Assembly: GCA_004764695.1 (NCBI GenBank) | Contig: SMSO01000031.1 | Coordinates: 6,058,761-6,122,760, forward strand | DNA: 64,000 bases | Reading direction: 5' to 3' | Origin: Schizochytrium sp. TIO01 | Taxonomy: Eukaryota; Protista; Bigyra: Labyrinthulomycetes | Part shown: piece after piece, positions 29,184-55,555 of the stretch | Position numbering within the stretch: position 1 is the stretch's first letter | Layout of the letters: every line of letters begins with the position of its first letter | Notes under the pieces: model-generated | Told to the model about the DNA's origin: nothing | Database searches by the model: none | Seen by the model: the letters and a program-made list of their open reading frames with translations, nothing else | Program-made: the position numbers and the translations under genes

Positions 29184-32100
29184 TCAAGTATTGCCTTTAC
29201 TCAGATTTTGCGAAGATCGAGAGGATCTTCTAGTATTATTCTTAGTGGAACTGTTGCTGGAGGAAGCACGGGGTCGTTTTCCACTCGGGATGTCAGCAAT
29301 AGAAGACGGTCGTTGACCATCAGTAGCATTCGCATTGTTATTCCCAGATCTTCGTCTTTTTCCAAGGGAACCATCGCGGGGATCCTCAAGATGTGAAGGG
29401 CTAGAGAACTTACGAGGGCGCTTTCCTTGCTGACTATGTGACGGAGGAGACAGTTCTGAAGTGTTGCTAATCGCTCCTTCTTCTCTTTCTGTTCTCCTCT
29501 TTGCAGAGTCATCAGATATCATGCTTGCTTCCTCGTCTGAGTTCTCGGACTGAGAAGACCCTTCAACAATTTCCATGCTGCTACTTCCTTTACGTAAACA
29601 TAAAATGTAATCATCGAATTCATCCTTCATTTGAAGATGAAGAATTTCATTCTCTCGATGCGAAAGTTCAGCCTCTGCAGATCCCTCATCCTTTAGCTGT
29701 TTAAGCCATGTAATTGATCCTTCGTCCTTCTTTCGCACAATTATTCCTAGCAATGCATTCGGGATCACCACAGGAAGATGAAACGACAAATCATTGAGAT
29801 AGGGATAGTCGCTTATGATGCTCTCCCTTGGAGAAACTTCAACCATGCACAACGCAAGTACTTTCTTTTCTGTTTCACTGTTAGGAATTGATCTCAGTAA
29901 GCGCGCCTTCAAGTCGTTGGCCCAAAGCTCGGTACTTGCGTCATAAACCGAAGGAATTCTATTGGACATAATTTCCATAAATGAGAGTCTGTATTCCTTC
30001 AAACAAGAGAATTCATCGAGAGAATTATTGATGGCCAGATACCAATCCAATAGGTTTTGTGCATTTGAATCATCCTCTGGTAGAGACCTGCATTTGAGAT
30101 TTGTTTTGCAATGATACAGGTGGTTGACCTTCAAACAAACGAGCCCTTCCTCGTCTAAAAGATGATTAAACTCGACATCTTCCCAGAACGTCTTGCAAGG
30201 GTAGAATATCTCTCTTCGCACTGTCTCCTCGACGTTTAGAAAAACAAATGAGTAAACTGAGTACGTCACCTGGAAAGGCTTCAAAGGGTCATTAAGAGAT
30301 CCGTGAGGGTCTCGCCGAATACCAATCAGACCATACTTATTGGCTCCGCCGGTCACCTCATCTCTATTTTCAGCTAGATTTCTTTCGCTCACACGAGGTG
30401 GTGGTTCCAACCGTAACAGAGATTCTGGGGTTTTCATCTGTTTGTATTCACCCTTCGGTATCGGCTCAGCTTTATGATCATTAAGAACAATCTTCTCAAT
30501 CTTGTTCATGACTGAATCAAAAGAACACGCCTCCATACCTTCTCGATTTTCGTTTTTATCTGATTGATCTTCGAGATTTTGTTGTTGAAAACAAAGATTG
30601 ACGTTGTCATCCAGAAGCCATACCCACTTCAGACCTAGAGCGGAAGACAAAAGCTGAATGAATAAACGCGCATACCCAATCCCTCCCCCCTTTGCTGACA
30701 CCGTGTCTCCGGGTTGGTATTTAGAATCCATTCTATCAGGCATCCCGATAATGACATATGCAGAGCCAAAGATGTCTCTGTAATTGTCAAATTGTTCTCC
30801 GGACCTGACTACCAGACATACTACTGTTTTCAAGCCATCTGCTTCAGGCAAGGCACCTCGATAGTCTAAAAGTGCTGTTCCTGCCCGGTTGTAAGATGGA
30901 ACAAAAACCCACCGATGCGTTTGTGCACCATCCTGGAGATGTAAACTATTGTCGTGACTTAAGCGAATCGGATTAAACGATGATCTGTCGTCGTATGATA
31001 TCCCGTGAAAGCCATCTATTGGGATTGACAAAGCAGGAATGTTTGGGAGAACATGAGCCGTGCCTTCAACTGACACTGAGACATTCTCGTACAGCGAAGA
31101 GCCTTTGTTGTAGGCTTGATTAAAAGAATTGGTCACTGGGCGAGCAGCGAATTCAGTGTAGGCATTATCCGAGACTACCTCTACCTCAACTGGCTGGCTG
31201 TTCGTATCAACAGAACTTAATTGCTTGTGTCTTGGTGCACCTGCATAGTCCATCTTTGCACTGGTTACACAGTCCCAGAGAGACGCTTGCACATGCGCTT
31301 GAGCTTTACGAAGAATCTTTATAGGATCTAGGCAGTTCTCTTTCATGTTCATCTTCGCTATTGATTCATTTGCAAAATTGACAAAATCTTCGTTCTCGGA
31401 ATCTGATGTCCAGCTCTCGAATGCAGATTTAACAGCTGGATCTTTTGTAAATCTGCCGTCATAATTGATACACTTTTGCAAAGTAGTGCTGTCCAGCACA
31501 GAAGGCGGATCAAGCTTGACTGGGCAGTCCTCATTACGGCAAGCAGCTTCGAGTGCCTCAACTTTTTTTATACCGATTTTAGTCTGGATAGCTTCGCCAG
31601 ATTCCTCACGCAAGTATTTCAGATATGTGTCAAGCCAACTTTTTGCTTTTTGTGAAGAACTAACAAGAAGCATGAGTGTTCGCTGCTGCATCGCATTGCG
31701 ATGGTACTGTCCTTTGGCAGGGTGATTATAGAAGTTGCGTAGTGGACTTTGAATTGAAACTGTAAGGTCTTTCCAGTACGGAAAAATGCAATGCTGCGAT
31801 CTTACAAGAGGGAGGGCCTCCGGAACAACCGGCTCTTCAAAGTTAATTGCATTCTTGAGCAGACGAATGAAATGCAGATATGTTCCTGTTTTACCCTGCT
31901 GGCACTGAGCCATCAGAAGCAAGCGTTTGGGATCTTCGTCTTTGCCAGGCGTGCGCCCGACATCGTAATGTGGATCTCTGGCTGTCGCCTCTGGTTTTGG
32001 AACTAAAGTTTTCCGATACGACTCGATGCTATGCAAAGGATTGGTCACCGACAGCTTACCTTTGATATATTCACATTTAAAGCCTTGAAGTTGACCTTTC

Positions 32101-35100
32101 CTCTGCACGTACTTATCAACATCACCTGGAATGCATTGATCAATACGGTTTCCACCCCAACAATGCTCATACTTGTTCTCAATGGCTTGTGCAATCTGGG
32201 TTTTGAAGCGTTCAGGGCTCATTAGTACAGTCGGCAACACATGAACGTACATACGAACCTTCCAAGTTCCTCGCAGAGGCAGGTTCCCTGATGACTCTCT
32301 CTGACGAAGCTCCTGGGAAAAACGATCTTCTAGCTGCCGTTGTGAATCCGCATGAAAGCAGACATTATTTCCAGGATCAGATACAGCTACACTTCCACAG
32401 TCTATGAAGAATCTTTGTAACCAGATACCGATCTCCTCAATCTCAATCTTCACGTCATTCTCGTTCTCAATGACACCGTTACCGTTAACGCGAACTTCAA
32501 TATCACGAAAACCATCTTCATCTTTTCGCAAAGCTGGATAGCGACAGACACGACCAAACTCCTGGACAAATGTCGAATACGTTTTAGAAGATCGCAAACG
32601 CAAGTCAAGAAAACGCAACGAATGAGGGAATGTGTCCCCCATTCGTCCCTTTTCACACAAAATAACGATGGTGGGGAGATTCTCGAGGTCTTCATACTTT
32701 GCAGCTGCTTCCTTTTGTTTCGGGGCTCTCCCGCTACGAGTCTTATGCGAAGTTAGATTTTGCTCTGACGCCGCTCCCTGGTGCTTTTTAACACGCTCCC
32801 TTATTCCTTCGCGAGGACTGGAGCTGGCGGCTTGTTCAAATGGGTGCCGTAAATCGCGTTCCAGAGTCCATGTTTCTACTTGCTTATGTAAGCTTGTACC
32901 ACTACGGGTTCTGCCACGACCAGATTTCTGTTTGGATTCATGCCCACCAATATCTCCTACAACGCTTAAAACACCACCTTTGTTTATATCATCACTTGTG
33001 AGTTTAAGTCGTTTCAGAGCACTACGAAGGCCATCTTGGACCGACAAGTTCTCATCTGACTCGTAAACACGGATAACAGCCATACGCCCCGTGCGATACT
33101 TTGGGTGGATGTCTAAAAGGTCGTATACAAGACGATCAGTCTCATTATACCATTCTTCAGATGTGTTATCCTGCTCAGAACTTAGGTCTTCATTATGACG
33201 TTTGAGCTTTGACCAAATGATGTATTTCCATACAGCTCTCCATACGTGTTCTGAAAAGTTCCAATTGTCTAATTCAGCATCCTCTAATTCACTCTGATCT
33301 GTTTCGTTTATCATTTTTTCCAAGTTGTGCCTTTCGTCTGAAGAAAGGACCTCCTGAAACATTGATCTCTCCATTTCCTTTTGACCTTCAGATTCATTAG
33401 AGTCGGCAGCTGGACGTATAAGAGCAAAAAGTTCGCCCAAAGCTGTTCGACGAAGTGCATTTAGTAAAACGTCCATGACATGTTGTACGTCAGCCATCCC
33501 GGTTGCTGCTCTAAATTTAGTCACTGTCTCATCGGGCTGATCAAACCCCAGGATCTCGGCAAAACCAAGCATCTGCGCAAACTCCCTTAACTTAGATTCA
33601 TCTCTCACGCATGTTAAGTTGTCTTTTTTTGGAAGAAAAATGTCCTCCGCAGTCTCCATGGCCTTTGTGTCGAATAAATGTTCCCGGTCCACGCGATATA
33701 TAGCCAAGAACGTTAGAGACAAGATATAGTCTGTCATGAGAATATGACCATTATAAAGTGGCACATTCTTTGCGATGCTTTTGCTTGTTTTACGCGCTCT
33801 GCCAAGGCGTTTACCAAAGTTCGCATCTGTCTCACATATAGAAAGGAAGGTTTGGAAAGTGTTGTCACTGAGCACCTTTTGTCGCCTCCTTGGTAGGCAA
33901 TCTACATCGACAAAGAGACCTTTTCTCTTTCTTTCCTCTCCATCCATATCACATAGAATGGGCATCCCACTGGCCATGACATCGAGATATTTTTTATTTC
34001 TATGTCTCGGTGCTCTAATTTTTTTGTCAAAGTCATCTTTGGAAAACCCCAGCCAGGTAAGAATACCCGTGTCTGGATCAAAGTTAGAATCATCAAATTC
34101 TAAGAGACGGAATGGGTATCTCACTTTCAATTTCGTCTCGCCATTTCCAACAACTTCTACAGAAAACGTCATTGCACCAGAATTTTTAGTTCTGGGGGGA
34201 AGGTGCGCAAATTTATCTGACTTCGCCAGGGTTTCGTCAACAAGACTATGGAGAACTCTTACGTATGATCCGTAATCATGCATAGGAAAACGAAAGGTGC
34301 GATTATCATGGCCATGAACCGGAATCTCGCCACTGCTTGAAGGGGCCCTCGCACCGGCTATCAGATTGAAGCGTAGGTTGCTAACCTTTGCAGGAATAGC
34401 CCATGTTGCTGTCTCCACATAGTAGTCCATACTTCGATATAGAGAGGTCGCATTATACCAAGTAACAACGTTATTTTTGGGAATACGGGTGCATGAAGTT
34501 AAAGCATTCTGGGGTGTTGCAGAGACGAGTAGACGCAGGACACATGCACCTTTCACTTTCTTGATCTCCTTGTTTTCTGTGTTTTCCGTCTTTTCCGTGT
34601 TCTCTGTGGCTTCCTTAATTTTCTCATTCAAGAGTTGGTGATGTGCACCATTCAGTCCTGGCCCATGGTGACATTCATCTGCAACGATCAAAATCAGGTT
34701 TCGCTCATTCTCAGCCAAAGCCTGTAGCTGCTTCAACTGTTCGTTGACTGCGGGTTTCGGTTCCATTGTGTATTTCATGACATGTCCATCTGTCAGCATT
34801 GCAGCTTCAACTCGTTCTTTTGTTTGCTGTAAAAGTGAGTTGAAGTTTGGCACGAGAATGACAAAATGCACACGGTCAAACATTGTAGCCAACTTAGAGG
34901 GACTTTTGGAGCCAGTTAGAACCTCACAGGCTTTCTCAAAAAGCTTTTCGGCGACTTCGCGCTGTTCTGGATGAGCGAGGCCTTGGCTACCCTCTTCTCG
35001 TTCAGGGATTTCGTTGTCCTGCTCACTTTGAGCATACTCTGATGGCAGTGTAATTTCGACGGCAGGAATACTTTCACCGGACTGGTCAGGTTTCGTCACC

Positions 35101-36425: not shown

Positions 36426-36514
36426 GCTTGTCTACGCGCACGCACTAGCTCGTCGCTCCGCAGACCGGCCTCGCCTACAGACAGCCGTATCGCTCTATTC
36501 CAGTTTTGCATTCA
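36426..36514 (-). promoter_or_regulatory. Conserved proximal upstream/5'UTR element shared by all three GREB1-like copies
   Basis: GAATGCAAAACTG(G/A)AATAGAG...GAGG(C/T)C(G/A)GTCT(G/A)CGGAGCGAC...ATG precedes copy A (minus strand), copy B (38239-38325) and copy C (47943-48026). Confidence 0.6.
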
Positions 36515-37460
36515 TTCGCGCTCATTGTATCATCTCAATCTGTTTCTATCGCATTCCTCATTATATCACTATCAATAAAATAGAACTAAAATAGAACTAA
36601 AATAGAAATAGACAGAAATAGACAGAAATAGCACACACACATACACACACCTTCCTCGCCACGTTTCTTCAACCCATCAATACCCAAGCCAGGGCCGACC
36701 AAGCCTCGCCTCCTGCTACCCTCAGCCGATGACCGGAGGCTGTCAGAAGAGCCATTCTCTGGCCACTTGCCCTCTCTCACGCATGGCCCTGAGCCGTTTT
36801 GCCGGACTTCAGCAGCACATGCGCTCAATCAATCTTGGTTGACTGAGAAGCGAAAGATTTTCCAGTTTCCGCGCTCCTACCCTCTCCTAACAGAGCCCTA
36901 CACCCTCGCTCGCTAGCTGGATGGTTAGATAGACGTACGCCTATCTCACAGTAGGCGGTGGCTACCGATATCTAGGCAGCGGTATCTGAAGTGTGCATCA
37001 AAGGGGAACTAGATTAGATTCTGAGAGCGCCTTGATTGATGAATGAATAAGGCCATGCTCGCAGCTGAGCAGGGAATGGCAGCGGGGCCTCGGACTCTGA
37101 GGCTGTTGGGTAGAAACTGGACAGCATGGGGGTCCTAGGAGCAGGCGACAGCGGTATCAAACTCAGCGTCGCAGCTATGATGGGAGATCAGTCCTTCCGT
37201 TTCGGATAGATCATGTTCTGCTTCATTTTTGACCGACCCGCCAGCCGGCTATTTTTTTTAATTTGTTTATTGTTTTTTTTTTTTATTTTTTTTTTTCATG
37301 AATCTTTAAATTAAAATAAAATAGTTGGAACGGTTCTTCAGAGACAGAGAGTAGATGTGCATGTCATACAACTGGGAAGGTAGAGATATGTAATAGCCTC
37401 CTATGATATATGATGACGGCGTAGGGCATATATATTTTTAGTTAGCTACTACCATGAATC

Positions 37461-37465
<5 letters not shown>

Positions 37466-37492
<27 letters not shown>
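37466..37492 (+). repeat. Poly-T tract (27 nt)
   Basis: Read directly. Confidence 0.9.
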
Positions 37493-37759
37493 CTCTCGTT
37501 GTCTCCTTAAAAATATATATGTATTTTAAAAAAATAGTAACAAATTTGTTTTTAACGAAAGTAGTATCGGCCTACATTTCTTTAATATATCGGTTTCTAC
37601 ATACTTTAATTAATAAACACTTTTTTTTAACTTTTTTTAATTAAAATTAAAATAGTATGTATAGGTCTGCACGGCTTATTGTTCTTTGAACATTTATGTT
37701 CCTTAGTATGTACTTCAGAGAACACCATTCCTTTTCTAGGGAATGAATAAAATCTGCAT

Positions 37760-38322
37760 ATTATCTTTAGATCAAGTGGAATCTTGGCAACGCATGAAGC
37801 TACTTAGAAGCAGGCTCAGTCTCAAAATCTTTAAGAGTGTTATAACGATGGAGCTTCTGGCAAACCACATAATTCGTATCGCTGCCTCCATTACGGGCGC
37901 TCTCAGAAAGAATAGAACTGACTAAGCACCACACTCGTAGAGAAGGAAGTAATCCCGCTTCCAATTTTCTCTCCGTTGGCGGTCAGCCAAGATTGACAGA
38001 GATATTTGCTTAAGAAACAAAAGATCTGTTACAACGTTTCAACAGAGATACGTTAGGACAAACAAACAATGAGTCGTTCTTCCTAAGACCTCTGATTTTT
38101 AGCTGACAAGAGACGAAGAGGTTCTTAGCTTGATTGATGCGTTGATTAGATAAAGTTCATAATTTTTGTAATGCCTTTATATGACACCATAGGAGTAGCT
38201 TAAGATCATTCTGATCGAAGCAAGAACATGTCGATCGTGAATGCAAAACTGAAATAGAGTAATAAATTTGTCTGACGGCGAGGTCGGTCTACGGAGCGAC
38301 ACACAACTGCGTGCAGACAACC
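37760..38322 (+). repeat. Duplicated upstream region of copy B (homologous to 47484-48023)
   Basis: Colinear shared words, e.g. CTTCCAATTTTCTCTCC(G/A)TTGGCGGTCAGCCAAGATTGACAGAGATATT, TAGCTGACAAGAG, GATTGATGCG and GAATGCAAAACTGAAATAGAG. Confidence 0.85.
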
Positions 38323-41300
38323 ATGCTTGCGAAAAAGTATGCAAAGGGCACTGGCACGCGAAAGCGCCCTAGTGCAGCGAGCGGAGCGAAGCCGAACGAT
38401 TCGTCCGATCTACCAGGTGATGGCCACCAAACTCAAAAGAAATCAAGAACCACAAAGAAACCAACACCTCAACAGAAATCAAGAACCACAAAGAAACCAA
38501 CACCTCAACAGAAATCAAGAACCACAAAGAAACCAACACCTCAACAGAAATCAAGAACTCCAGAGAAACCAACAACTCCAGAGAAGCCAGCAACTCCAGA
38601 GAAACCAACAACTCCAGAGAAGCCAGCAACTCCAGAGAAACCAACAACTCCAGAGAAACCAACAACTCCAGAGAAACCAGCAACTCCAGAGAAACCAACA
38701 ACTCCAGAGAAACCAACAACTCCAGAGAAACCAACAACTTCAGAGATACCAACAACTCTAGAGAACCCAACAACTCCAGAGATATCAACAACTCCAGAGA
38801 ATCCAACTGAGGTTCCGAATAAGACAAGCGATAAACCTCCTCTGGTGCTGGTGCTGAATGGTGCTCTTGACGAGTTGAGCGAAAATACAGAAAATGGTGA
38901 TGAGGCACAACCAGACTGGCCACAGGCACTGCTGGAAATGCAAAGGAACAAAGAAATTGAGCTCCTGCCTTTGACAAAACTTCTTAATCATTGTTGGCTC
39001 GAAGGGGAGGTTCCCAACCTTTCGAACGAACGGGCACTGCGCGGGACCCTTAGATTCCGTTTCAACCCAGGCACAACAGAGGCAATGGATGTTTTTCGTG
39101 CTGAGATTTTTGCTTTGGTGATGTTGAAAACGACCCACGAATTTTGTTACTCAAATAAGTTTCAGTTTCTCAAAATATCCGAGCGAGATCAAACGCCATG
39201 CTTAAATGTTGATGAAGATCACGTTGGCATTTTGAGGGCTCTTGAGTCGAAGAGCAAGAACGCTTTTAAAAAGTTTGAAAAACCAGTTCGAAGCATGTAC
39301 AATCTCATTCAGCAATTGCGAAGAGACCATCTTCGTAAACCATTTGAAGTTGAAGAGCTCAAGAAGCTCCTCGAAGATTGTAAGCACGACAATAAAACAC
39401 AGTTCTTATCGTGCCAAACGGATGATAGTTTTGATGTTGACTCTACCACAAGCATTTCCAATAATTGCATCATGATATTCCCCTCTCCAAATGATACAGC
39501 AACTATCAGAAGGATTATTGAAGAAAATGAGAAAGACGACGAAGAGGCTGAAGAATCAGATACTGACTCAGATGGAGATTCTGAGACAATTCACCTCTGT
39601 GATATTCCTTTGACCGTAGAGTTTTCTGACAACAACACAAATAGTTCAAGTGATTTAAAGAACGCAGGGGTGTTGAAGTTGCACCTCGCAACAAAGCATA
39701 TGAATGACTGCAATTTCCTTAAGCAAATTCTGCAAGGTCCATGCAATCGGAACGAGTTTGACGATGCTGAGTTATCAGCATTTAGCGAGGATTGTCTCAA
39801 CTCATTCGACAAAAAGAGTCTCTCAGAGCTCAGCAGGGCTGCACAAAATACTCTATTACAAGAGCTAAGATTCCATATTATCAATCCTATCCCTAGAAAT
39901 CCGTCAGGACAAAATCAAGGAGACCAATTTCAAAAGCTAGAATCTATCAGAAAGAATATAGAGGAAGAAATTCTGAAGGAAGTGAAAATTGTTGTTTCTG
40001 CAGCGAAGGAAGGCCACGACCTTCCTACCGTCAAAATAACACTGCCAACAAGGTATGCTCAAAGTGAGCAGGACAACGAAGTTCCAGAGCGAGAGGAGGG
40101 TAGCCAAGGCCTCGCTCATCCAGAACAGCGCGAAGTCGCCGAACAGCTTTTCGAGAAAGCATGTGAAGTTCTAACTGGCTCCAAAACGTCCTCTAAGTTG
40201 GCTACAATGTTTGACCGTGTGCATTTTGTCATTCTCGTGCCAAACTTCAACTCACTTTTACAGCAAACAAAAGAACGCGTCGAAGCTGCAATGCTGACAA
40301 ATGGACATGTCATGAAATACACAATGGAACCGAAAACTGCAGTCGATCAACAGCTGAAACACCTAAAGTCTTTGGCTGAGAATGAGCGAAACCTGATTTT
40401 GATCGTTGCAGATGAGTGTCACCATGGGCCAGGAGTGAGTGGTGCACATCACCAACTATTGAATGAAAAGTTGAATGGAGAAAACGTCCTGCGTCTGCTC
40501 GTCTCCGCAACACCCCAGAATGCTTTAACTTCATGCACCCGTATTCCTGAAAATAACGTTGTTCCTTGGTATAAGGCGACCTCTCTGTATCGAAGTATGG
40601 ACTACTATGTGGAGACAGCAACATGGGCTATTCCTGCAAAGGTTAGCAACCTACGCTTCAAAGTGTATGACAATGCGAGGGCCCCTTCAAGCAGTGGCGA
40701 GGTTCCGGTTCATGGACATGCTGATCGTACCTTCCGTTTTCCTATGCATGATTACGGATCATACGTAAGAGTTCTCAATAGTCTTGCTGACGAAACTCTG
40801 AAGAAGTCAGATGAATTTGCGCACCTTCCCCGCAGATCCAAAAATTCTGGTGCAATGACGTTTTCTGTGCAAATTGTTGGAAGTGGTGACACGAAATTGA
40901 AAGTGAGATACCCATTCCGTCTTTTAGAATTTGATGAATCTAACTTTGATCTAAACACGGGTATTCTTAACCGGCTGGGGTTTGACGCTGCTGACTTTCC
41001 ACGAATCAGTGAAGCAACAGAACATGGAAATAAAAAATTTATCGATGTCACGGCCAGAAGGACGCCCAATCTATGTGACATGGATGGAGAGAAAGGAAAG
41101 AAAGAGGGTGGCTTACTCGATGTCACGGCCAGTGGGACGCCCAATCTATGTGACATGGATGGAGAGAAAGGAAAGAAAGAGGGTGGCTTAGTCGATGTCA
41201 CGGCCAGTGGGACGCCCAATCTATGTGACATGGATGGAGAGAAAGGAAAGAAAGAGGGTGGCTTAGTCGATGTCACGGCCAGTGGGACGCCCAATCCATG

Positions 41301-44300: not shown

Positions 44301-45858
44301 GAATAGTTTACATCTCCGGGATGATGCACGAACGCATCGGTGGGTTTTTGTTCCGTCATACAACCGGGCAAGAGCAGCACTTTTAGACTATCGAGGTGCC
44401 TTGCCTGAAGCAGATGGCTTGAAAACAGTAGTATGTCTGGTAGTCAGGTCCGGAAAACAATTTGACAATTACAGAGACATGTTTGGCTCTGCATATGTCA
44501 TTATCGGGATGCCTACTGAGATGCCTTCTAAATACCAACCCGGAGACACGGTGTCAGCAAAGGGGGGAGGTATTGGGTATGCGCGTTTATTCATTCAGCT
44601 TTTGTCTTCCGCTCTAGGTCTGAAGTGGGTATGGCTTCTGGATGACAACGTCAATCTTTGTTTTCAACAACAAAATCTCGAAGATCAATCAAATAAAGAC
44701 AAAACTCGAGAAGGTATGCAGGCGTGCTCTTTTGATTCAGTCATGAACAAGATTGAGGAGGTTGTTCTCGAGGATCATAAAGCCAGACCGATACCGAAGG
44801 GTGATTACAAACAGATGGAAAACCCGGAATCATTATTACGTTCAGAACAACAACAACCTTGTGCGAGCGAAACAAAACCAGCTAAAGTTAGAGATGAGAT
44901 GACTGGTGGAGCCAACAAGTATGGTATGATTGGCATTCGGCGAGACCCGTATGGATCTCTTTGTGAACCTTTAAAGCCTTTCCAGGTGACGTACTCAGTT
45001 TACTCATTTGTTTTTCTAAACGTCGAGGAGACAGTGCGAAGAGAGATATTCTACCCTTGCAAGACGTTCTGGGAAGATGTCGAGTTTAATCATCTTCTAG
45101 ACGAGGAAGGGCTAGTTTGTTTGAAGGTGAACCACCTATATCATTGCAAAACAAATCTTAAACGCAGGTGTCTACTAGAAGATGATTCAATTGCAAAAGA
45201 AATAGAGGATTGGTATCTGTCCATTGACTTCGATGAATTCTCCTTTTTAAGGAACTACGAAGTCTCCATTTTGGAAATCATGTCCAATAGGTTTCCTTTG
45301 GCTTATAACGCAAGTACCGAGCTTTGGGCCAACGCCTTGAAGCAGCGCTTACTGGAGTTTACTCCCGACGGTGAAGCAAGAAGGGAAGTACTTAAGCTGT
45401 GTATGCTGGAAATCTCTACTAGCCGTGATAATTCCTGGGTCAATGAATTGTCTCTTCACCTTCCTTCTGAAATGCCCACAAAAGATTCTTCTTGGTTACT
45501 TGGGTTACTTGTGCGAAAGGGAGACGCCGAATATACCATTTTTGACAACCTTATTAAAACGGTTGCTGTAGGTATCAAACTCAAGTACCGAGACCCCGGA
45601 AGTTTTTGTCTTGAAAAGATTTGGGAGAATCGAGATTTCTTTCTGTTTACGATTAAGAAAAGGCATTCTGATGATATGGACATTGAGGAACGTTGTTCCC
45701 AATCTGAGAATCTGCCTGGGAAGGGAAGCACAAACTCTGGCGGTTCTCCACAGAAGGAGATACAAGGACAGGAACGAAAGCGTGTAGCTAGCGAGGCCTT
45801 GGTATATGATTTGACTCAAGACGAATCAGAAAACAAGAAACTGAAGAGTACGTCTTAA
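38323..45858 (+). CDS. GREB1-like protein copy B: circularly permuted SF2 helicase + TAGT-type glycosyltransferase (~2511 aa)
   Basis: Same motif order as copy A: DECH 40411, SATP 40504, QEFGRVCRY 42715, AQCQQGKT ~43348, TAGT ~44341-45160. ATG 38323 chosen because its context (CAGACAACCATG) aligns with copy A (TAGACAAGCATG). Confidence 0.8.
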   Translation: MLAKKYAKGTGTRKRPSAASGAKPNDSSDLPGDGHQTQKKSRTTKKPTPQQKSRTTKKPTPQQKSRTTKKPTPQQKSRTPEKPTTPEKPATPEKPTTPEKPATPEKPTTPEKPTTPEKPATPEKPTTPEKPTTPEKPTTSEIPTTLENPTTPEISTTPENPTEVPNKTSDKPPLVLVLNGALDELSENTENGDEAQPDWPQALLEMQRNKEIELLPLTKLLNHCWLEGEVPNLSNERALRGTLRFRFNPGTTEAMDVFRAEIFALVMLKTTHEFCYSNKFQFLKISERDQTPCLNVDEDHVGILRALESKSKNAFKKFEKPVRSMYNLIQQLRRDHLRKPFEVEELKKLLEDCKHDNKTQFLSCQTDDSFDVDSTTSISNNCIMIFPSPNDTATIRRIIEENEKDDEEAEESDTDSDGDSETIHLCDIPLTVEFSDNNTNSSSDLKNAGVLKLHLATKHMNDCNFLKQILQGPCNRNEFDDAELSAFSEDCLNSFDKKSLSELSRAAQNTLLQELRFHIINPIPRNPSGQNQGDQFQKLESIRKNIEEEILKEVKIVVSAAKEGHDLPTVKITLPTRYAQSEQDNEVPEREEGSQGLAHPEQREVAEQLFEKACEVLTGSKTSSKLATMFDRVHFVILVPNFNSLLQQTKERVEAAMLTNGHVMKYTMEPKTAVDQQLKHLKSLAENERNLILIVADECHHGPGVSGAHHQLLNEKLNGENVLRLLVSATPQNALTSCTRIPENNVVPWYKATSLYRSMDYYVETATWAIPAKVSNLRFKVYDNARAPSSSGEVPVHGHADRTFRFPMHDYGSYVRVLNSLADETLKKSDEFAHLPRRSKNSGAMTFSVQIVGSGDTKLKVRYPFRLLEFDESNFDLNTGILNRLGFDAADFPRISEATEHGNKKFIDVTARRTPNLCDMDGEKGKKEGGLLDVTASGTPNLCDMDGEKGKKEGGLVDVTASGTPNLCDMDGEKGKKEGGLVDVTASGTPNPCDMDGKKGKKGKKEGGLLDVDCLPRRRQKVLCDNAFQTFLSICETNANFGKRLSKERKATKFIAKNVPLYNGHILMTDYILSLTFLAIYRVDREHLFDTKAMETAEDIFLPIDNYSTCVRDESKLKEFAQMLGFAEILGFDQPNEKVTEFKTATGMANVQHVMDVLLNALCHTAWGELIGFRAAGGSEDDDSSEIDDSIEADNDSDEVFDLNTSDFKKTLSSDEIEILKKMRKKRKFSSKKVEFKTEGIRPDARRILWKYIIWSKLKRHEEDLSHEQDNTSEAWYNETDRLVYDLLNIDPKYRTGRMAVIRVYESDENLSVQDGLRSALKRLKLTSDDKGGVLSVVGDIGGHESKQKSGRGRTRSGTSLHNQVEPWTLERDLRHPFEQESSPETRETILDRVAKHQGMGSEQDTRRHTKAKQKEAAAKYEDLENLPTIVILCEKGRMGDTFPHSLRFLDLRLRSSKTYSTFVQEFGRVCRYPALRKDEDGFRDIRVDDNGVIENEDAVTTETRRWLQTFFINCGSVAVSDPGNNVCFHADSQQQLEDRFFQELHKRKSGGVLPLRGTWKIRMYVHVLPTVLMSTERFQTQIAKAIENKYEHCWGENRIDQCIPGDVDKYVQRKGELQGFKCEYIEGKLSVTNPLHSIESYRKMLIPKATARDPHYDDGRTPGKDEDSKRLLLMAQCQQGKTGTYLHFVRLLKNAIKFEEPVVPEALPLARSQQCIFPYWENLTISNQIPLYNLYNHPAKGQYHRKAMEQRTLMLLVGAAQNPTNWLQTYLQYLCRESGEAIQTKIGIEKVMALGDACRNKGCPVKLEPPSVIDQLTLQKCINYDGRFTKDPAVKSAFESWTLENDNTDFVNFAKESIANINMKDKCQDSMKILRKAQAHLQKSLWGSRTMTKMDRAGAPRHNQLSSADTNSQPVEKVSKESYTEFAARPVTNSFNQAYNKGSSLYENLSVSDEDSAHVLLNIPALSIPIDGFHRISTDDRSSFSPIRISHGNSLHLRDDARTHRWVFVPSYNRARAALLDYRGALPEADGLKTVVCLVVRSGKQFDNYRDMFGSAYVIIGMPTEMPSKYQPGDTVSAKGGGIGYARLFIQLLSSALGLKWVWLLDDNVNLCFQQQNLEDQSNKDKTREGMQACSFDSVMNKIEEVVLEDHKARPIPKGDYKQMENPESLLRSEQQQPCASETKPAKVRDEMTGGANKYGMIGIRRDPYGSLCEPLKPFQVTYSVYSFVFLNVEETVRREIFYPCKTFWEDVEFNHLLDEEGLVCLKVNHLYHCKTNLKRRCLLEDDSIAKEIEDWYLSIDFDEFSFLRNYEVSILEIMSNRFPLAYNASTELWANALKQRLLEFTPDGEARREVLKLCMLEISTSRDNSWVNELSLHLPSEMPTKDSSWLLGLLVRKGDAEYTIFDNLIKTVAVGIKLKYRDPGSFCLEKIWENRDFFLFTIKKRHSDDMDIEERCSQSENLPGKGSTNSGGSPQKEIQGQERKRVASEALVYDLTQDESENKKLKSTS
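38435..38810 (+). repeat. Coding minisatellite: 36-bp (QKSRTTKKPTPQ) units followed by ~14 18-bp (TPEKPT/A) units
   Basis: CAACAGAAATCAAGAACCACAAAGAAACCAACACCT repeated, then ACTCCAGAGAA(A/G)CCA(A/G)CA repeated. Confidence 0.92.
41044..41358 (+). repeat. Coding tandem repeat, four 75-bp units (DVTASGTPNLCDMDGEKGKKEGGL[L/V])
   Basis: GATGTCACGGCCAG recurs at 41044, 41119, 41194 and 41269; the last unit carries a 9-bp extra. Confidence 0.92.

Positions 45859-46307: not shown

Positions 46308-46311
<4 letters not shown>

Positions 46312-46357
<46 letters not shown>
46312..46357 (+). repeat. Poly-A tract (46 nt)
   Basis: Read directly, ~450 nt after the copy B stop codon. Confidence 0.9.
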
Positions 46358-46359
<2 letters not shown>

Positions 46360-47133: not shown

Positions 47134-47459
<326 letters not shown>

Positions 47460-47483
47460 CGCATCAGATTGCCCTTTCAAGAT

Positions 47484-48023
47484 CTATCATCTCTAGAAAA
47501 AGCGGAATATGGCAAGGCAGGGAGCTATGTAAGGCAACCTCAGTCTCGAAATTCTTAGGAGTGTTCTAAGTGGAAAGCCTCTTCTGAACTTTAAAATTCG
47601 TCCATCACAGGCGCTCTCAAGAAAAAAAAATAGAATCGACTAAGTACCGCACCATCAGACTAAGTAGAAGTCTGCTTCCAATTTTCTCTCCATTGGCGGT
47701 CAGCCAAGATTGACAGAGATATTCGCTGAAGAAGCAGGAGATCTATTGCAACGTTACAATGGCGATGCGTGAGCTAATTGTCGTTCCTCTTATGGCTTCC
47801 AATCCTTAGCTGACAAGAGTAGAAGGGGCCCTCAGCTCGATTGATGCGCTGATCAGATGTGGGTAATAATGTTTGTATTGCCTTTATATAACCAAAGAAG
47901 TAGTTTAAACCATTATATTCGAAACAAGAGCATGCCGATCATGAATGCAAAACTGAAATAGAGGAATAAGGTTCTGAGGGTGAGGTCAGTCTGCGGAGCG
48001 ACGCGCAACTACGTGTATTCAAG
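47484..48023 (+). repeat. Duplicated upstream region of copy C (homologous to 37760-38322)
   Basis: Colinear similarity with the copy B upstream region. Confidence 0.85.
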
Positions 48024-51000
48024 ATGTCTAAGAAGGTTGTTGTGGAGGGCGGCAGCCCGGCACAGTCCGCTAGTCCAGGGAACGAACCGGAGCAGTGCGA
48101 TGTGATCATCTTAGAAAGTGATGACGATGAAGACGATCAATCGGGGCTGGGGTCAGGACCTGATGAAGTATCGCGAGCGTCATCACGAAGTGAGTCAGGA
48201 GAGCCACCTGGTGTACGGGATGAATCGCCTTTTGACATCCTTCTCGAGAAAGAACAAGCTATCCAGCAAGCTGTCGGGTCATCCGAGGATGACCCGAAGG
48301 TTGAAGATGAAGCAGTGGTTTTGGACACCCTTCGTGAGAAAGAACAAGCTATCCAGCAAGCTGCCGGGTCATCCGAGAATGACCCAAAGGTTGAAGATGA
48401 AGCAGTGCGTTTATGCAACATTCCGTTCACCGTAGAGCTTGCTAATGGCAATGCAAATGGCTCAGGCAATATAGAGTACAAAGGGGTGATAAAGCTGCAC
48501 CTCGCAACGAAGTATAGCCGCAACGCTGGTTTCCTTGAACTGATTTTGAAGGGCCCGCGCACCAAAGGTAAAGCTTTTACTGATTCTGACATGTCTTCAT
48601 TTAACAAGGACGATCCAAATCCAATTAGCAAGGAAGAACTAGCATCAATCAGTAAGGCTGCGCGGAATAGTCTTCAACATAAGCTCGAGTTCCTTCCGCT
48701 ACGATTGAAAGACAATCCATTTGAAAACATGTTTATTGAGATAGTAAAATTTAAGTCGCAAAAGAAGAATGTTCCATGGGTCAAGATAACACTACCTATG
48801 GATTCTGCTCTAATGCCGGAGCGAAGCATCGGCCCAGAGCGAGAAGAGAGGAGACAAGGCCTCGCTCATCCAGAACAGCGCGAAGTCGCCGAAGAGCTTT
48901 TCGAGATAGCATGTCAAGCTCTGACTGGCTCCAAAAGTCCCTCTAAATTGGTCACAATGTTTGACCGTGTGCATTTTGTCATTCTCGTGCCAAACTTCAA
49001 CTCACTTTTACAGCAAACAAAAGAACGAGTTGAAGCTGCAATGCTGACAGATGGACATGTCATGAAGTACACAATGGAATCGAAAACTGCAATCAATCAA
49101 CAGTTGAAGCAGCTACAGGTCTTGGCTGAGAATGAGCGAAACCTGATTTTGATCGTTGCAGATGAATGTCACCATGGGCCAGGCCGGGGTGGAGCACATC
49201 ACCAACTATTGAATGAAAAATTGAATGGGAAAAACATCCTGCGTCTACTCGTCTCTGCAACACCCCAAAACACTTTAACTTCATGTACTCGTATCCCTGA
49301 AAATAACATTGTTACCTGGTATAAGGCAACCTCTCTGTATCGAAGTATGGACTACTATGTGGAGACAGCAACATGGGCTATTCCTGCAAAAGTTCGCAAC
49401 CTACGCTTCAATCTGATAGCCGGTGCGAGGGCCCCTTCAAGCAGTGGCGAGATTCCGGTTCATGGCCATGATAATCGCACCTTTCGTTTTCCTATGCATG
49501 ATTACGGATCATACGTAAGAGTTCTCCATAGTCTTGTTGACGAAACCCTGGCGAAGTCAGATAAATTTGCGCACCTTCCCCCCAGAACTAAAAATTCTGG
49601 TGCAATGACGTTTTCTGTAGAAGTTGTTGGAAATGGCGAGACGAAATTGAAAGTGAGATACCCATTCCGTCTCTTAGAATTTGATGATTCTAACTTTGAT
49701 CCAGACACGGGTATTCTTACCTGGCTGGGGTTTTCCAAAGATGACTTTGACAAAAAAATTAGAGCACCGAGACATAGAAATAAAAAATATCTCGATGTCA
49801 TGGCCAGTGGGATGCCCATTCTATGTGATATGGATGGAGAGGAAAGAAAGAGAAAAGGTCTCTTTGTCGATGTAGATTGCCTACCAAGGAGGCGACAAAA
49901 GGTGCTCAGTGACAACACTTTCCAAACCTTCCTTTCTATATGTGAGACAGATGCGAACTTTGGTAAACGCCTTGGCAGAGCGCGTAAAACAAGCAAAAGC
50001 ATCGCAAAGAATGTGCCACTTTATAATGGTCATATTCTCATGACAGACTATATCTTGTCTCTAACGTTCTTGGCTATATATCGCGTGGACCGGGAACATT
50101 TATTCGACACAAAGGCCATGGAGACTGCGGAGGACATTTTTCTTCCAAAAAAAGACAACTTAACATGCGTGAGAGATGAATCTAAGTTAAGGGAGTTTGC
50201 GCAGATGCTTGGTTTTGCCGAGATCCTGGGGTTTGATCAGCCCGATGAGACAGTGACTAAATTTAGAGCAGCAACCGGGATGGCTGACGTACAACATGTC
50301 ATGGACGTTTTACTAAATGCACTTCGTCGAACAGCTTTGGGCGAACTTTTTGCTCTTATACGTCCAGCTGCCGACTCTAATGAATCTGAAGGTCAAAAGG
50401 AAATGGAGAGATCAATGTTTCAGGAGGTCCTTTCTTCAGACGAAAGGCACAACTTGGAAAAAATGATAAACGAAACAGATCAGAGTGAATTAGAGGATGC
50501 TGAATTAGACAATTGGAACTTTTCAGAACACGTATGGAGAGCTGTATGGAAATACATCATTTGGTCAAAGCTCAAACGTCATAATGAAGACCTAAATTCT
50601 GAGCAGGATAACACATCTGAAGAATGGTATAATGAGACTGATCGTCTTGTATACGACCTTTTAGACATCCACCCAAAGTATCGCACGGGGCGTATGGCTG
50701 TTATCCGTGTTTACGAGTCAGATGAGAACTTGTCGGTCCAAGATGGCCTTCGTAGTGCTCTGAAACGACTTAAACTCACAAGTGATGATATAAACAAGGG
50801 TGGTGTTTTGAGCGTTGTAGGAGACGGGTATGAGTTTCATTGGAGATCGACGCAATCTTCCAAATTACTCTTTCAGTTAGAAAATTCAACCCTGAAACTT
50901 AAACAGTTGGAGAGATGGACTCTAACGCGTGATTTGCGGAACCCGTTCGAACAAGCTGCCGACCCTAATGCTCACAAAGGGGTACTAGAGCGAGTGCGAA

Positions 51001-53774
51001 GACGCCAAGAAATGAGTTCAGAGCAAGATGCATTTGATTTGATGAAACTAGAACAAAGGGACGCCTGGGCGAAGTATGAAGACCTTGAGAACCTTCCTAC
51101 AATTCTTATCTTGTGTGAAAAAGGTAGAATGGGAGATACATTCCCTCATTCGTTGCGCTTCCTTGACCTGCGTCTGCGGTCCTCTAAATCGTATTCGAAT
51201 TTTCTGCAGGAGTTCGGTCGTGTCTGTCGCTATCCAGCTTTGCGAAAAGATAAAGATGGTTTTCGTGATATTGAAGTTCGCGTTGACGATAGTGGGGACA
51301 TTGAGAACGAACATTTCATTAAGATGGAAATTCAGAACATTTGCATCTGGTTGCAAAGATTCTTCATAGACTGTGGAAGTGTAGCTGTATCTGATCCTGG
51401 AAATAATGTCTGCTTTCATGCGGATTCACAACGGCAGCTAGAAGATCGTTTTTCCCAGGAGCTTCGTCAGAGAGAGTCATCAGGGAACCTGCCTCTGCGA
51501 GGAACTTGGAAGGTTCGTATGTACGTTCATGTGTTGCCGACTGTACTAATGAGCCCTGAACGCTTCAAAACCCAGATTGCACAAGCTATTGAGAGCAAGT
51601 ATGAGCATTGTTGGGGTGAACACCGTATTGATCAATGCATTCCAGGTGATGTTGATAAGTACGTGCAGAGGAAAGGTGAACTTCAAGGCTTTATACGTGG
51701 ATATTCCGAAGGTAAGCTGATGGTGACCAATCCTTTGCATAGTATCGAGTCATATCAGAGAACGTTAGTCCCAAAACCGGAAGCGACAGCGAGAGATCCC
51801 CATTACGATGTCGGACGCACACCTGATGATGAGAAAGACTCAAAACGCTTGCTTCTCATGGCCCAGTCGCAACAAGGCAAAACAGGAGCATATCTACATT
51901 TTGTTCGTCTGCTCAAGGATTCAATCGAATTTGAAGAACCGGTGGTTCCAGAGGCCCTCCCTCTTGCCAGGTCGCAGCAATGCATTTTTCCTTACTGGAA
52001 GGACCTCACCACTTCAATTCAGAGACCTCTTCGCTACTTCTATAATCACCCTGCCAAAGGACAGTATCATTTCAACGCGATGCAACAGCGAACACTCATG
52101 CTTCTTGCTGGTGCTGAGCAAAACCCAACAAACTGGCTTCAGACGTATTTGCAATACTTACGCGGGGAATCTGGCGAAGCTATCCGGACAAAAATTGGAA
52201 TAGAAAAAGTTAAGGCACTCGGAGACGCTTGCCGTAATAAGGGCTGCCCAGTTAAGCTTGAGCCTCCTTTTGTGATAGATCAGCTTACTTTGCAAAAGTG
52301 TATCAATTATGACGGCAGATTTACAAAAGATCCAGCTGTTAAATCTGCATTCGAGAGCTGGACTTTGGAGAACGATAACACAGACTTTGTCGATTTTGCA
52401 AAGGAATCAATTGCGAATATGAACATGAAAGACAAGTGTCAAGATCCTATGAAAATCCTTCATAAAACTCAAATGCATGTACAAAAGTCTCTCTGGGGCT
52501 CCCGTACCATGACAAAGATGGACCGTGCAGGTGCACCAAGACACACGCAATCAAGTTCTGTTGATACGAACAGCCAGCCAGTTGAGAAAGTCTCGAAAGA
52601 ATCCTACACTGAATTCGCTGCTCGGCCAGTGACCAATGCTTTCAATCAAGCCTACAACAAAGGCTCTTCGCTCTATGAGAATGTCTCAGTGTCAGGTGAA
52701 GACTCTGCTCATGTTCTCCTGAACATTCCTGCTTTGTCAATCCCAATAGACGGTTTTCACGGAATATCTACTGACGACAGATTATCGTTCAGTCCAATTC
52801 GCTTAAGTCACAGTAGTTTACATCTCCGGGATGGTGCACGAACGCATCGGTGGGTTTTTGTTCCGTCTTACAACCGGGCAGCAACAGCGCTTTTAGACTA
52901 TCGAGGTGCCTTGCCTGAAGCAGATGGCTTGAAAACAGTAGTATGTCTGGTAGTCAGGTCTGGAGAACAATTTGACAATTACAGAGACATCTTTGGCTCT
53001 GCATATGTCATTATCGGGATGCCTACTGAGATGCCTTCTAAATACCAACCCGGAGACACGGTGTCAGCAACGGGGGGAGGGATTGGGTATGCGCGTTTGT
53101 TCATTCAGCTTTTGTCTTCCGCTCTAGGTCTGAAGTGGGTATGGCTTCTGGATGACAACGTCAATCTTTGTTTTCAACAACAAATTGTCGAAGATCGATC
53201 AAATAAAGACGAAAGGCAAGAAGGTATGCAGGCGTGTTCTTTTGATGCAGTCATGAACAAGATTGAGAAGATTGTTCTTGATGATCATAAAGCCGAGCCG
53301 AAACCGAAGGGTGAATACGAACAGATGAAAAACCCAGAATCGCTGTTACGGTTGGAACCACCACCTCGTGTGAGCGAAAGAAAACTAGCTAGAAATAGAG
53401 ATGATTTGACTGGCGGAGCCAACAAGTATGGTCTGATTGGCATTCGGCGAGACCCGTGTGGATCTCTTAATGACCCTTCGAAGCCTTTCCAGGTGACGTA
53501 CTCAGTTTACTCATTTGTTTTTCTAAACGTCGAGGAGACAGTGAGAAGAGAGATATTCTACCCTTGCAAGACATTCTGGGAAGATGTTGAGTTTAATCAT
53601 CTTTTAGATGAGGGAGGGCTCGTTTGTTTGAAGGTGAACTATCTATATCATTGCAAAACAAATCTCAATCGTCGATTTCGGTCCATCGACGCTTCGGAAT
53701 TCATCAGTAAGCCAAGACGAAAACGTTCTCATGCTCCCTTGAGCGAACCTCCTACTAAAAGGAAACAGTATTAG
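48024..53774 (+). CDS. GREB1-like protein copy C: permuted SF2 helicase + TAGT-type glycosyltransferase, shortened at both ends (1916 aa)
   Basis: DECH 49161, SATP, QEFGRVCRY, AQSQQGKTGAY ~51860, TAGT ~52851-53670; ORF is uninterrupted. Confidence 0.8.
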   Translation: MSKKVVVEGGSPAQSASPGNEPEQCDVIILESDDDEDDQSGLGSGPDEVSRASSRSESGEPPGVRDESPFDILLEKEQAIQQAVGSSEDDPKVEDEAVVLDTLREKEQAIQQAAGSSENDPKVEDEAVRLCNIPFTVELANGNANGSGNIEYKGVIKLHLATKYSRNAGFLELILKGPRTKGKAFTDSDMSSFNKDDPNPISKEELASISKAARNSLQHKLEFLPLRLKDNPFENMFIEIVKFKSQKKNVPWVKITLPMDSALMPERSIGPEREERRQGLAHPEQREVAEELFEIACQALTGSKSPSKLVTMFDRVHFVILVPNFNSLLQQTKERVEAAMLTDGHVMKYTMESKTAINQQLKQLQVLAENERNLILIVADECHHGPGRGGAHHQLLNEKLNGKNILRLLVSATPQNTLTSCTRIPENNIVTWYKATSLYRSMDYYVETATWAIPAKVRNLRFNLIAGARAPSSSGEIPVHGHDNRTFRFPMHDYGSYVRVLHSLVDETLAKSDKFAHLPPRTKNSGAMTFSVEVVGNGETKLKVRYPFRLLEFDDSNFDPDTGILTWLGFSKDDFDKKIRAPRHRNKKYLDVMASGMPILCDMDGEERKRKGLFVDVDCLPRRRQKVLSDNTFQTFLSICETDANFGKRLGRARKTSKSIAKNVPLYNGHILMTDYILSLTFLAIYRVDREHLFDTKAMETAEDIFLPKKDNLTCVRDESKLREFAQMLGFAEILGFDQPDETVTKFRAATGMADVQHVMDVLLNALRRTALGELFALIRPAADSNESEGQKEMERSMFQEVLSSDERHNLEKMINETDQSELEDAELDNWNFSEHVWRAVWKYIIWSKLKRHNEDLNSEQDNTSEEWYNETDRLVYDLLDIHPKYRTGRMAVIRVYESDENLSVQDGLRSALKRLKLTSDDINKGGVLSVVGDGYEFHWRSTQSSKLLFQLENSTLKLKQLERWTLTRDLRNPFEQAADPNAHKGVLERVRRRQEMSSEQDAFDLMKLEQRDAWAKYEDLENLPTILILCEKGRMGDTFPHSLRFLDLRLRSSKSYSNFLQEFGRVCRYPALRKDKDGFRDIEVRVDDSGDIENEHFIKMEIQNICIWLQRFFIDCGSVAVSDPGNNVCFHADSQRQLEDRFSQELRQRESSGNLPLRGTWKVRMYVHVLPTVLMSPERFKTQIAQAIESKYEHCWGEHRIDQCIPGDVDKYVQRKGELQGFIRGYSEGKLMVTNPLHSIESYQRTLVPKPEATARDPHYDVGRTPDDEKDSKRLLLMAQSQQGKTGAYLHFVRLLKDSIEFEEPVVPEALPLARSQQCIFPYWKDLTTSIQRPLRYFYNHPAKGQYHFNAMQQRTLMLLAGAEQNPTNWLQTYLQYLRGESGEAIRTKIGIEKVKALGDACRNKGCPVKLEPPFVIDQLTLQKCINYDGRFTKDPAVKSAFESWTLENDNTDFVDFAKESIANMNMKDKCQDPMKILHKTQMHVQKSLWGSRTMTKMDRAGAPRHTQSSSVDTNSQPVEKVSKESYTEFAARPVTNAFNQAYNKGSSLYENVSVSGEDSAHVLLNIPALSIPIDGFHGISTDDRLSFSPIRLSHSSLHLRDGARTHRWVFVPSYNRAATALLDYRGALPEADGLKTVVCLVVRSGEQFDNYRDIFGSAYVIIGMPTEMPSKYQPGDTVSATGGGIGYARLFIQLLSSALGLKWVWLLDDNVNLCFQQQIVEDRSNKDERQEGMQACSFDAVMNKIEKIVLDDHKAEPKPKGEYEQMKNPESLLRLEPPPRVSERKLARNRDDLTGGANKYGLIGIRRDPCGSLNDPSKPFQVTYSVYSFVFLNVEETVRREIFYPCKTFWEDVEFNHLLDEGGLVCLKVNYLYHCKTNLNRRFRSIDASEFISKPRRKRSHAPLSEPPTKRKQY
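48239..48407 (+). repeat. Coding 90-bp tandem duplication (EKEQAIQQA.GSSE.DPKVEDEAV x2)
   Basis: GAGAAAGAACAAGCTATCCAGCAAGCTG at 48246 and 48336. Confidence 0.9.
49329..50824 (+). repeat. Near-identical ~1.5-kb block, inverted partner of 32953-34448
   Basis: Reverse-complement identity checked at several points; few substitutions (e.g. EDLSSEQD vs EDLNSEQD). Confidence 0.9.
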
Positions 53775-55468: not shown

Positions 55469-55469
55469 A

Positions 55470-55553
<84 letters not shown>

Positions 55554-55555
55554 AA
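55469..55555 (+). repeat. (AAAG)n microsatellite, ~21 units
   Basis: Read directly. Confidence 0.95.

Follow-up and report, generated by a model that had tools for sequence, protein, structure and literature searches.

An array of three large genes of the GREB1 family was identified in Schizochytrium sp. TIO01, within a 64,000-nt stretch of contig SMSO01000031.1 (assembly GCA_004764695.1) that is referred to here as the window and to which all positions refer unless another contig is named. Each of these genes (G1, G2 and G3) encodes a circularly permuted superfamily 2 (SF2) helicase module joined to a C-terminal TET-associated glycosyltransferase (TAGT) domain, and a candidate TET/JBP-like dioxygenase is encoded elsewhere in the same genome. 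We propose, with a probability of roughly 40%, that the array and this dioxygenase form a pathway of nucleic-acid glycosylation that proceeds in two steps, as for base J, with a motor fused to the transferase. By this model, the G1 to G3 proteins would act in the nucleus, where the helicase module would bind nucleic acid, track along it using ATP and deliver the TAGT domain to 5-hydroxymethyl-pyrimidines (5-hydroxymethyluracil, hmU, and/or 5-hydroxymethylcytosine, hmC). The TAGT domain would transfer a sugar from a uridine diphosphate (UDP)-sugar onto hmU/hmC, the hydroxymethyl base being supplied by the single, unlinked and divergent TET/JBP-like dioxygenase (contig C6, 235075-236085). Such a pathway would be akin to the kinetoplastid sequence of JBP followed by JGT, or to the hypermodification carried out by TET and TAGT enzymes of phages and giant viruses, and its target could be host DNA, DNA of foreign origin or RNA. 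Substrate, sugar, location, coupling of ATPase to transfer and pairing with the dioxygenase are all steps that we infer.

The region at 29184-53774 was found by open reading frame (ORF) listing and translation to be filled by three intact, uninterrupted ORFs. G1 (29184..36425, minus strand) encodes 2413 amino acids (aa) in the order N-terminal domain, cpSF2 helicase, conserved middle region, TAGT domain and a 300-aa variable C-terminal extension, the last of which carries basic motifs of the KRPRK/KRRR type. G2 (38311..45858, plus strand) is transcribed divergently from G1 and encodes 2515 aa when read from a GTG codon, with its first ATG, the likely start, at 38323. In G3 (48024..53774, plus strand, 1916 aa), neither the N-terminal domain nor the C-terminal extension seen in G1/G2 is present, and the C-terminus is a basic tail (PRRKRS...TKRKQY). 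Frames that stay open for 1,900-2,500 codons in DNA of 44% G+C are far above chance expectation. By Pfam analysis, the cpSF2-GREB1 family (PF20692) was matched over model positions 3-711 of 716 with E values of 3.4e-92 (G1), 7e-94 (G2) and 1e-87 (G3), and the TAGT family (PF20691) was matched at 50.5, 51.2 and 53.2 bits, respectively, for a cut-off of 27.5 bits (E 3.2e-13 for G1). When the whole 64-Mb genome (37 contigs) was searched in six frames, no cpSF2-GREB1 or TAGT copy was detected beyond G1-G3, and pseudogene remnants of further copies were absent from the rest of the 64-kb window. All three genes are GREB1-family paralogues, and each encodes a single polypeptide.

These results bear out much of an initial annotation of the window, which had been made from the DNA letters and had described a locally expanded, intact set of three intronless paralogues over about 25 kb, with the GREB1 architecture of an SF2 helicase fused to a C-terminal GT-A-like domain. 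Both PF20692 and PF20691 were detected in all three proteins, and the motifs that the initial annotation had quoted (FVPSYNRA, GGIGYARLFIQ, WVWLLDDNV and WEDVEFN) were each found in all three translations. The intronless state is consistent with the unbroken frames and with collinear contigs of probable RNA runs (34501-36490 and 38265-40125).

The cpSF2 module of G1 was located by the PF20692 genome search at 31830..34976 (minus strand). By motif search, its minus-strand elements were found to include motif II (DECH, 34668-34679), motif III (SAT, 34506-34523), a motif V-like EKGRMGDTFP (32625-32654), motif VI (QEFGRVCRY, 32538-32564) and Walker A (QQGKTG, 31884-31907). The modules of G2 (40114..43431; DECH 40411-40422, SAT 40504-40521, motif VI 42715-42741, GKT 43351-43374) and G3 (48864..51920; DECH 49161-49172, SAT 49254-49271, motif VI 51207-51233, GKT 51864-51887) lie on the plus strand. 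Walker A follows motifs II-VI because the module is circularly permuted, and it comes last, about 900 residues beyond the DECH of motif II. In an alignment of 30 family members (the 3 array genes and 27 relatives), DECH, SAT, the motif V-like EKGRMGDTFP, QExGRxCRY and QxGKTG were conserved, and motifs I, II, III and VI were likewise conserved in the protist, coral and annelid relatives. The helicase of vertebrate GREB1 has been described as catalytically inactive (PMC7968844, PMC6163654). This feature, reported for the vertebrate protein and not family-defining, was not matched by the array, in which motifs I, II, III and VI are present. Judged by its ATPase motifs, which are intact in all three genes, the helicase is apparently working.

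The TAGT domain was mapped in G1 to 30096..30914 (minus strand) by Pfam, AlphaFold, Foldseek and PHROG analyses, with its minus-strand motifs at 30885-30905 (PSYNR), 30666-30686 (GGIGYAR), 30600-30617 (LLDDNV) and 30168-30188 (FWEDVEF). The corresponding plus-strand domains are at 44338..45156 in G2 (DDN 44635-44652, WED 45067-45087) and at 52848..53666 in G3 (DDN 53145-53162, WED 53574-53594). The motifs PS[YH]xR, GG[IV]GYxR, [IL]DDN and WED[VIL] were conserved in the aligned family, and the second half of the domain (WEDxEF) could be aligned family-wide. An active-site pattern of R...DDD...EDY/F has been described for the DNA-acting phage GT-A enzymes and JGT (bioRxiv 10.1101/2023.12.21.572611). 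GYAR, LDDN and WEDV were found to fit this pattern, with the third D changed to N and Y/F to V/I/L in all GREB1-like sequences seen.

Structure prediction of the G1 TAGT domain gave a GT-A fold (AlphaFold, predicted template modelling score 0.74) with a disordered insert after the DDN motif that spans about 35 residues in the model and up to about 90 aa in the sequence. The PDB neighbours of the modelled domain were all GT-A proteins (ColGalT1, GnT-I, B3GNT2 and TarP/TarS; Foldseek, E about 1e-5), and a sequence search of PDB with the domain gave no match. Among predicted viral structures (Foldseek, BFVD), the best matches were phage 'TET-Associated Glycosyltransferase' proteins and a beta-glucosyl-HMC-alpha-glucosyltransferase (E 1e-10 to 1e-8); PHROG 842, which bears the same TET-associated glycosyltransferase name, matched the domain at E 1.5e-10. 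By comparison of sequence and predicted fold, the nearest kin of the TAGT domain are the phage TET-associated and glucosyl-HMC glucosyltransferases. The C-terminal domain thus was found to agree with the TAGT/GT-A assignment of the initial annotation in the Pfam family, modelled fold and phage neighbours, and no mismatch with this assignment was encountered.

These matches also bear on the nature of the acceptor. In one alternative, which we regard as quite unlikely, the SF2 module would function as a helicase on RNA, and a modified RNA base, a small molecule or a lipid would be glycosylated by the TAGT domain. SF2 modules often act on RNA, the sequence does not fix DNA as the substrate, and GT-A relatives such as TarP use acceptors that are not nucleic acids; against these points, no characterised TAGT member acts on RNA and the best matches of the array domain are DNA-base glycosyltransferases.

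A whole-genome search for TET/JBP dioxygenases, the enzymes expected to supply the hydroxymethyl base, had a mixed outcome. No gene scored above the Pfam Tet_JBP cut-off of 34.9 bits, and one divergent TET/JBP-like gene of a TAGT-linked family was found on contig C6 (234904-236085; likely start 235075, 336 aa). This candidate Fe(II)/2-oxoglutarate (2OG) enzyme carries an HxD...H...R triad and extended basic tails, and it was modelled with confidence as a double-stranded beta-helix. It is single copy in the genome, and orthologues were found in both Hondaea (76% identity) and Mucochytrium quahogii. Sequence searches with it of PDB and of the PHROGs gave no match. Its neighbourhood, with CBS, Sel1 and cytochrome b561 genes, was uninformative. 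The initial annotation had named the lack of a TET/JBP partner as a finding that would speak against glycosylation of bases; since this divergent TET/JBP-like dioxygenase is present, the genome does not lack a candidate for that role. Two small homologues of C5-cytosine methyltransferases are also encoded, at C13:2183160-2184488 (442 aa) and C6:55768-57249 (494 aa), with PF00145 scores of 115 and 102 bits; they may be either tRNA enzymes of the DNMT2 type or enzymes acting on DNA.

The family of the C6 dioxygenase was assigned by profile comparisons. By homology search, a 417-aa metagenomic protein was recovered in which a full TAGT domain is fused to a C6-type dioxygenase domain. This fusion family comprises more than 30 clusters, and among the 18 members tested TAGT was detected in all and Tet_JBP (E<=1e-3) in eight. 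Ten fused ORFs are on IMG/VR contigs that include metagenome-assembled genomes (MAGs) of giant viruses (GVMAG; loci L006-L015, e.g. L015:8001-9275), and the fused viral proteins are 416-452 aa in length. The giant-virus fusion is probably a one-protein DNA modifier that hydroxylates and then glycosylates; the words 'fusion' and 'fused' are absent from bioRxiv 10.1101/2023.12.21.572611. A profile restricted to protist-type sequences matched the oxygenase half of the fusion family at 99.7% in hhalign (E 2.9e-26). The protist-type profile also picked ORFs beside stand-alone TAGT genes in giant-virus loci; when eight such ORFs were scanned (seven adjacent and one fusion), seven were bona fide Tet_JBP proteins at 75-96 bits. 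Compared with an alignment of nine TAGT-adjacent viral Tet_JBP ORFs, the protist-type profile scored 93.5% (hhalign, E 2.3e-7), and in control comparisons with the P4H-type and AlkB-type dioxygenases of the same genome it scored 0.4% each. Taken together, these profile matches indicate that the genome encodes a putative dioxygenase that is remotely but specifically TET/JBP-like and belongs to a clade repeatedly coupled to TAGT.

On giant-virus MAG contigs (loci L016-L052, e.g. L023:8001-8768 with 8824-9825), stand-alone TAGT genes were found directly beside bona fide Tet_JBP genes (75-96 bits), often in convergent orientation and 50-60 nt apart. The wider dioxygenase family has 4,030 representatives at E<=1e-3, includes fusions to an FkbM methyltransferase, a P-loop nucleotide kinase and a GT25-like domain, and has one member above the Tet_JBP cut-off (41.1 bits).

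Several observations weigh against a nucleic-acid glycosylation pathway. The C6 dioxygenase reached only 15.6 bits on Tet_JBP, with no other Pfam family above cut-off, and structure comparison does not separate it among TET, AlkB and PHD enzymes, all of which gave Z scores of about 12.5. The gene is on a contig other than that of the array, and its link to the array is solely an argument from domain fusion. Short basic motifs resembling nuclear localization signals are present in each of the three proteins and hint at a nuclear location, although such motifs are weak evidence. The RNA status of the sequencing runs is only guessed. No report of modified bases in thraustochytrids was found in the literature, and no modified base is known in the lineage. 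Finally, human GREB1, the only biochemically studied member, O-GlcNAcylates a protein (PMC7968844), and the fusions to ankyrin, OTU and caspase domains in corals and Guillardia suggest protein-level signalling.

The last two points are those on which an alternative role in protein modification is based. The array proteins may be protein O-glycosyltransferases like human GREB1, in which case the TAGT domain would add GlcNAc or another sugar to Ser/Thr of chromatin- or nucleic-acid-bound proteins while the helicase would bind nucleic acid or remodel the target complex; this is a serious alternative, which we rate below an even chance. It is in accord with the sole bench result for the family, the O-GlcNAcylation of ER-alpha by human GREB1 (PMC7968844), and with the protein-interaction and protease domains (ankyrin, OTU and caspase) carried by coral and cryptophyte relatives. 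By contrast, the nearest relatives of the TAGT domain in sequence and fold act on DNA bases, and a member of the TAGT-linked dioxygenase family is present in the genome. In addition, at least four OGT-like genes of family GT41 were found in the genome, and GREB1 is therefore not needed as an O-GlcNAc transferase. The ATPase motifs of the array are also intact, unlike those of vertebrate GREB1 (PMC7968844, PMC6163654). The nucleic-acid glycosylation idea of the initial annotation is, on this balance, plausible but unproven. Its most specific form, in which a glycosylated hydroxymethyl-pyrimidine would be produced in the nuclear DNA of Labyrinthulomycetes themselves by the dioxygenase and the helicase-coupled TAGT, as a base-J-like epigenetic mark outside Euglenozoa, is doubtful.

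The three genes were compared with one another for signs of maintenance or diversification. Overall identity among G1-G3 is 70-80% and follows a mosaic pattern. A tract of 1,200 nt is identical between G1 (33182..34381) and G3 (49396-50595) in inverted orientation, as found by sequence comparison, and it sits inside 1,588 nt at 98.9% identity (32953-34540 versus 49237-50824). G1 and G3, which are inverted relative to each other and 15 kb apart, thus have zero differences across about 400 codons; in other segments the most similar pair is G1/G2 or G2/G3. High divergence, with synonymous divergence (dS) saturated and nonsynonymous divergence (dN) of 0.4-0.8, is seen in the N-terminal regions, in internal inserts, including an acidic one, and in the C-terminal tails. 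Whole-gene dN/dS among G1-G3 was 0.45-0.49, and no signature of positive selection was detected at this level. Judged from these patterns, the catalytic cores are homogenised by gene conversion, and the array is being maintained there and not diversified, with its variation located in the termini, inserts and coding tandem repeats. The description of the set as 'diversifying' in the initial annotation therefore holds for the termini and inserts and fails for the catalytic cores, given their gene conversion and the dN/dS values.

In a FastTree phylogeny of 13 sequences, the array genes formed one clade and three genes of Hondaea another, as would result from either independent duplication or concerted evolution. 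The intergenic region between G1 and G2 (36426..38310, no strand assigned) is a presumed bidirectional promoter, based on the orientation of the genes and a gap in contig coverage. Over its G2-proximal 550 nt (37759-38308) it shares 73% identity with the sequence upstream of G3 (47485-48010), and the duplication therefore took in the promoter.

Part of this pattern would also be expected of surveillance against viruses or other foreign DNA, in which the helicase would scan for invading DNA/RNA, such as giant-virus DNA with hydroxymethylated bases, and the TAGT domain would glycosylate the invader as a tag or to inactivate it, leaving the host's own genome unmodified. The local, lineage-specific copy number, gene conversion, variable termini and repeat inserts are in keeping with such a role, as are the expansion of relatives and their fusion to domains of the immunity type, namely a caspase in Guillardia and ankyrin or OTU in corals. 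Giant viruses encode TET and TAGT pairs, which makes hydroxymethylated viral DNA plausible. On the other side, the dN/dS of 0.45-0.49 carries no signature of positive selection, PADLOC gave no meaningful match to a defence family, and there are three copies only; a defence function is accordingly considered unlikely. The same comparisons address the view that the array is a non-enzymatic scaffold or is decaying, with its domains kept for binding only. The described inactivity of the vertebrate GREB1 helicase (PMC7968844) and the absence of both terminal regions from G3 would fit this view. It is rendered very improbable by the catalytic motifs of both domains, which are intact in all three copies, by frames open over 1,900-2,500 codons, by between-strain indels that are in frame and by dN/dS below 0.5.

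The terminal regions could not be assigned to known families. The N-terminal region of 470 residues is common to G1 and G2 only and matched no Pfam family at E up to 1, and no relatives of the N-terminal 420 residues of G1 were found in an Atlas search. Animal GREB1 has an N-terminal Zn-binding domain (PMC7968844); no Pfam match to a domain of this type was detected in the N-terminal 470 residues, and G3 is without the whole region. No family could be assigned to the 300-aa stretch that separates the helicase from the TAGT domain, nor to the C-terminal extensions of G1/G2. Coding tandem repeats were observed in the N-terminus of G2 (38430-38807; an 18-nt unit repeated 21 times that encodes TPEKP(T/A)), in the helicase insert of G2 (41042-41329; a 75-nt unit repeated 3.8 times that encodes a 25-aa unit) and in G3 (48230-48412; a 90-nt unit repeated twice).

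Transcription was assessed from two runs of the same strain, with contig sets of 21-23 Mb whose RNA type is a guess, and from a run of another strain that behaves alike. In all three runs, contigs overlie coding sequence of both G1 and G2. Those of G1 stop at 36489-36494 in every run, some 65-70 nt 5' of the ATG, and one G2 contig (run X2) has its left end at 38265, 58 nt 5' of the ATG at 38323. The 1.8-kb G1/G2 intergenic region is nearly free of contigs in these probable RNA runs. G1 and G2 are probably transcribed from a divergent promoter.

The array is set among ordinary eukaryotic genes, which encode MMS19, a ferlin-like C2 protein, a Vps4/katanin-type AAA ATPase, a methyltransferase, a subtilase, glutamine synthetase and a RhoGEF, and its G+C content resembles that of its surroundings. 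An origin from a mobile element or integrated virus was considered and rejected, based on the housekeeping neighbours and the absence of any transposase, integrase or terminal repeats framing the array; it is also contradicted by the presence of the genes in several strains and in the sister genus. The ferlin-like protein (3742-9570, 1942 aa) is intronless and has multiple C2 domains. The 7.6 kb or so that adjoin the array (21530-29183) have no ORF of at least 200 aa on either strand and may hold spliced or short genes. Long microsatellites were observed in A+T-rich spacers, namely (ATAG)x89 at 47105-47459, A46 at 46312-46357 and (AAAG)x22 at 55469-55555.

The degree of novelty suggested by the initial annotation was overstated. 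Orthologues in Hondaea already carry the name 'GREB1-like protein' in NCBI, and passages of PMC7968844 and PMC6163654 attribute both the architecture and the predicted DNA glycosylation by GREB1-type proteins to a computational analysis of 2013. Among the papers searched, none combines GREB1 with thraustochytrid names. Three points are new here: ATPase motifs are documented as intact in the non-vertebrate branch, the array is recognised as a gene-conversion mosaic, and a candidate TET/JBP-like partner is identified through the giant-virus fusion.

GREB1 is a much-studied cancer gene, and the original biochemical role of its family is unsettled. With its ATPase and glycosyltransferase sites intact, only three gene copies, all within a 25-kb block, and just one candidate TET/JBP-like partner, a culturable microbial eukaryote such as this offers a simple test ground for this question, and Aurantiochytrium is genetically tractable. 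If the proposed pathway exists, glycosylated DNA bases would extend beyond kinetoplastids and viruses. If it marks the cell's own DNA, helicase-guided DNA glycosylation would be suggested as the ancestral function of GREB1, later lost or repurposed in vertebrates; if it does not exist, protein glycosylation would be favoured as the general role of the family. The large, uncharacterised 2OG-dioxygenase family tied to TAGT in giant viruses is a lead for viral DNA hypermodification.

Comparison with other systems places the array closest to Hondaea fermentalgiana, in which three genes of the same architecture (GBG30758.1, GBG34091.1 and GBG34092.1; NCBI name 'GREB1-like protein') are 41-44% identical to those of the array. 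Two of them have consecutive accessions on one contig and are probably adjacent, and the gene model of GBG34092.1 is without the TAGT domain. Remoter relatives with both domains were found in Guillardia, the corals Stylophora and Montipora (many copies, with ankyrin/OTU), the annelid Owenia and metagenomes. Guillardia theta has two such genes on one contig (EKX34931.1 and EKX34922.1) that are more than 90% identical, encode about 3,000 aa and carry a caspase p20 domain. The non-vertebrate GREB1 branch looks like a set that is lineage-specifically expanded and fused to effectors. Vertebrate GREB1/GREB1L has the same order of cpSF2 (PF20692) followed by a C-terminal TAGT (PF20691) in one polypeptide. 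The array differs in its intact GKT, DECH, SAT and QxxGRxxR motifs, the vertebrate module being described as inactive (PMC7968844, PMC6163654). The array genes differ further in the N-terminal 470 residues without detectable similarity, the 300-aa extension of G1/G2, the lack of introns and the arrangement in three tandem copies.

With the base J system of kinetoplastids, the proposed pathway would share the logic of an unlinked TET/JBP dioxygenase (JBP1/2) followed by a GT-A enzyme of the TAGT family (JGT). JBP2 couples the base J pathway to an SF2 (SNF2) ATPase, whereas in the array the ATPase is fused to the glycosyltransferase and not to the hydroxylase. The protist dioxygenase is also small (336 aa), with no J-DNA-binding domain seen, and is only remotely TET/JBP-like; neither base J nor hmU is known from the lineage. 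The TET(5mYOX)-TAGT modules of phages and giant viruses are closest to the array TAGT in fold and sequence, and the protist dioxygenase has homologues in the oxygenase half of the giant-virus TAGT-dioxygenase fusions. The viral TET and TAGT genes are adjacent or fused, short and without a helicase, whereas the protist genes are unlinked, cellular (with housekeeping neighbours) and, in the array, fused to a helicase.

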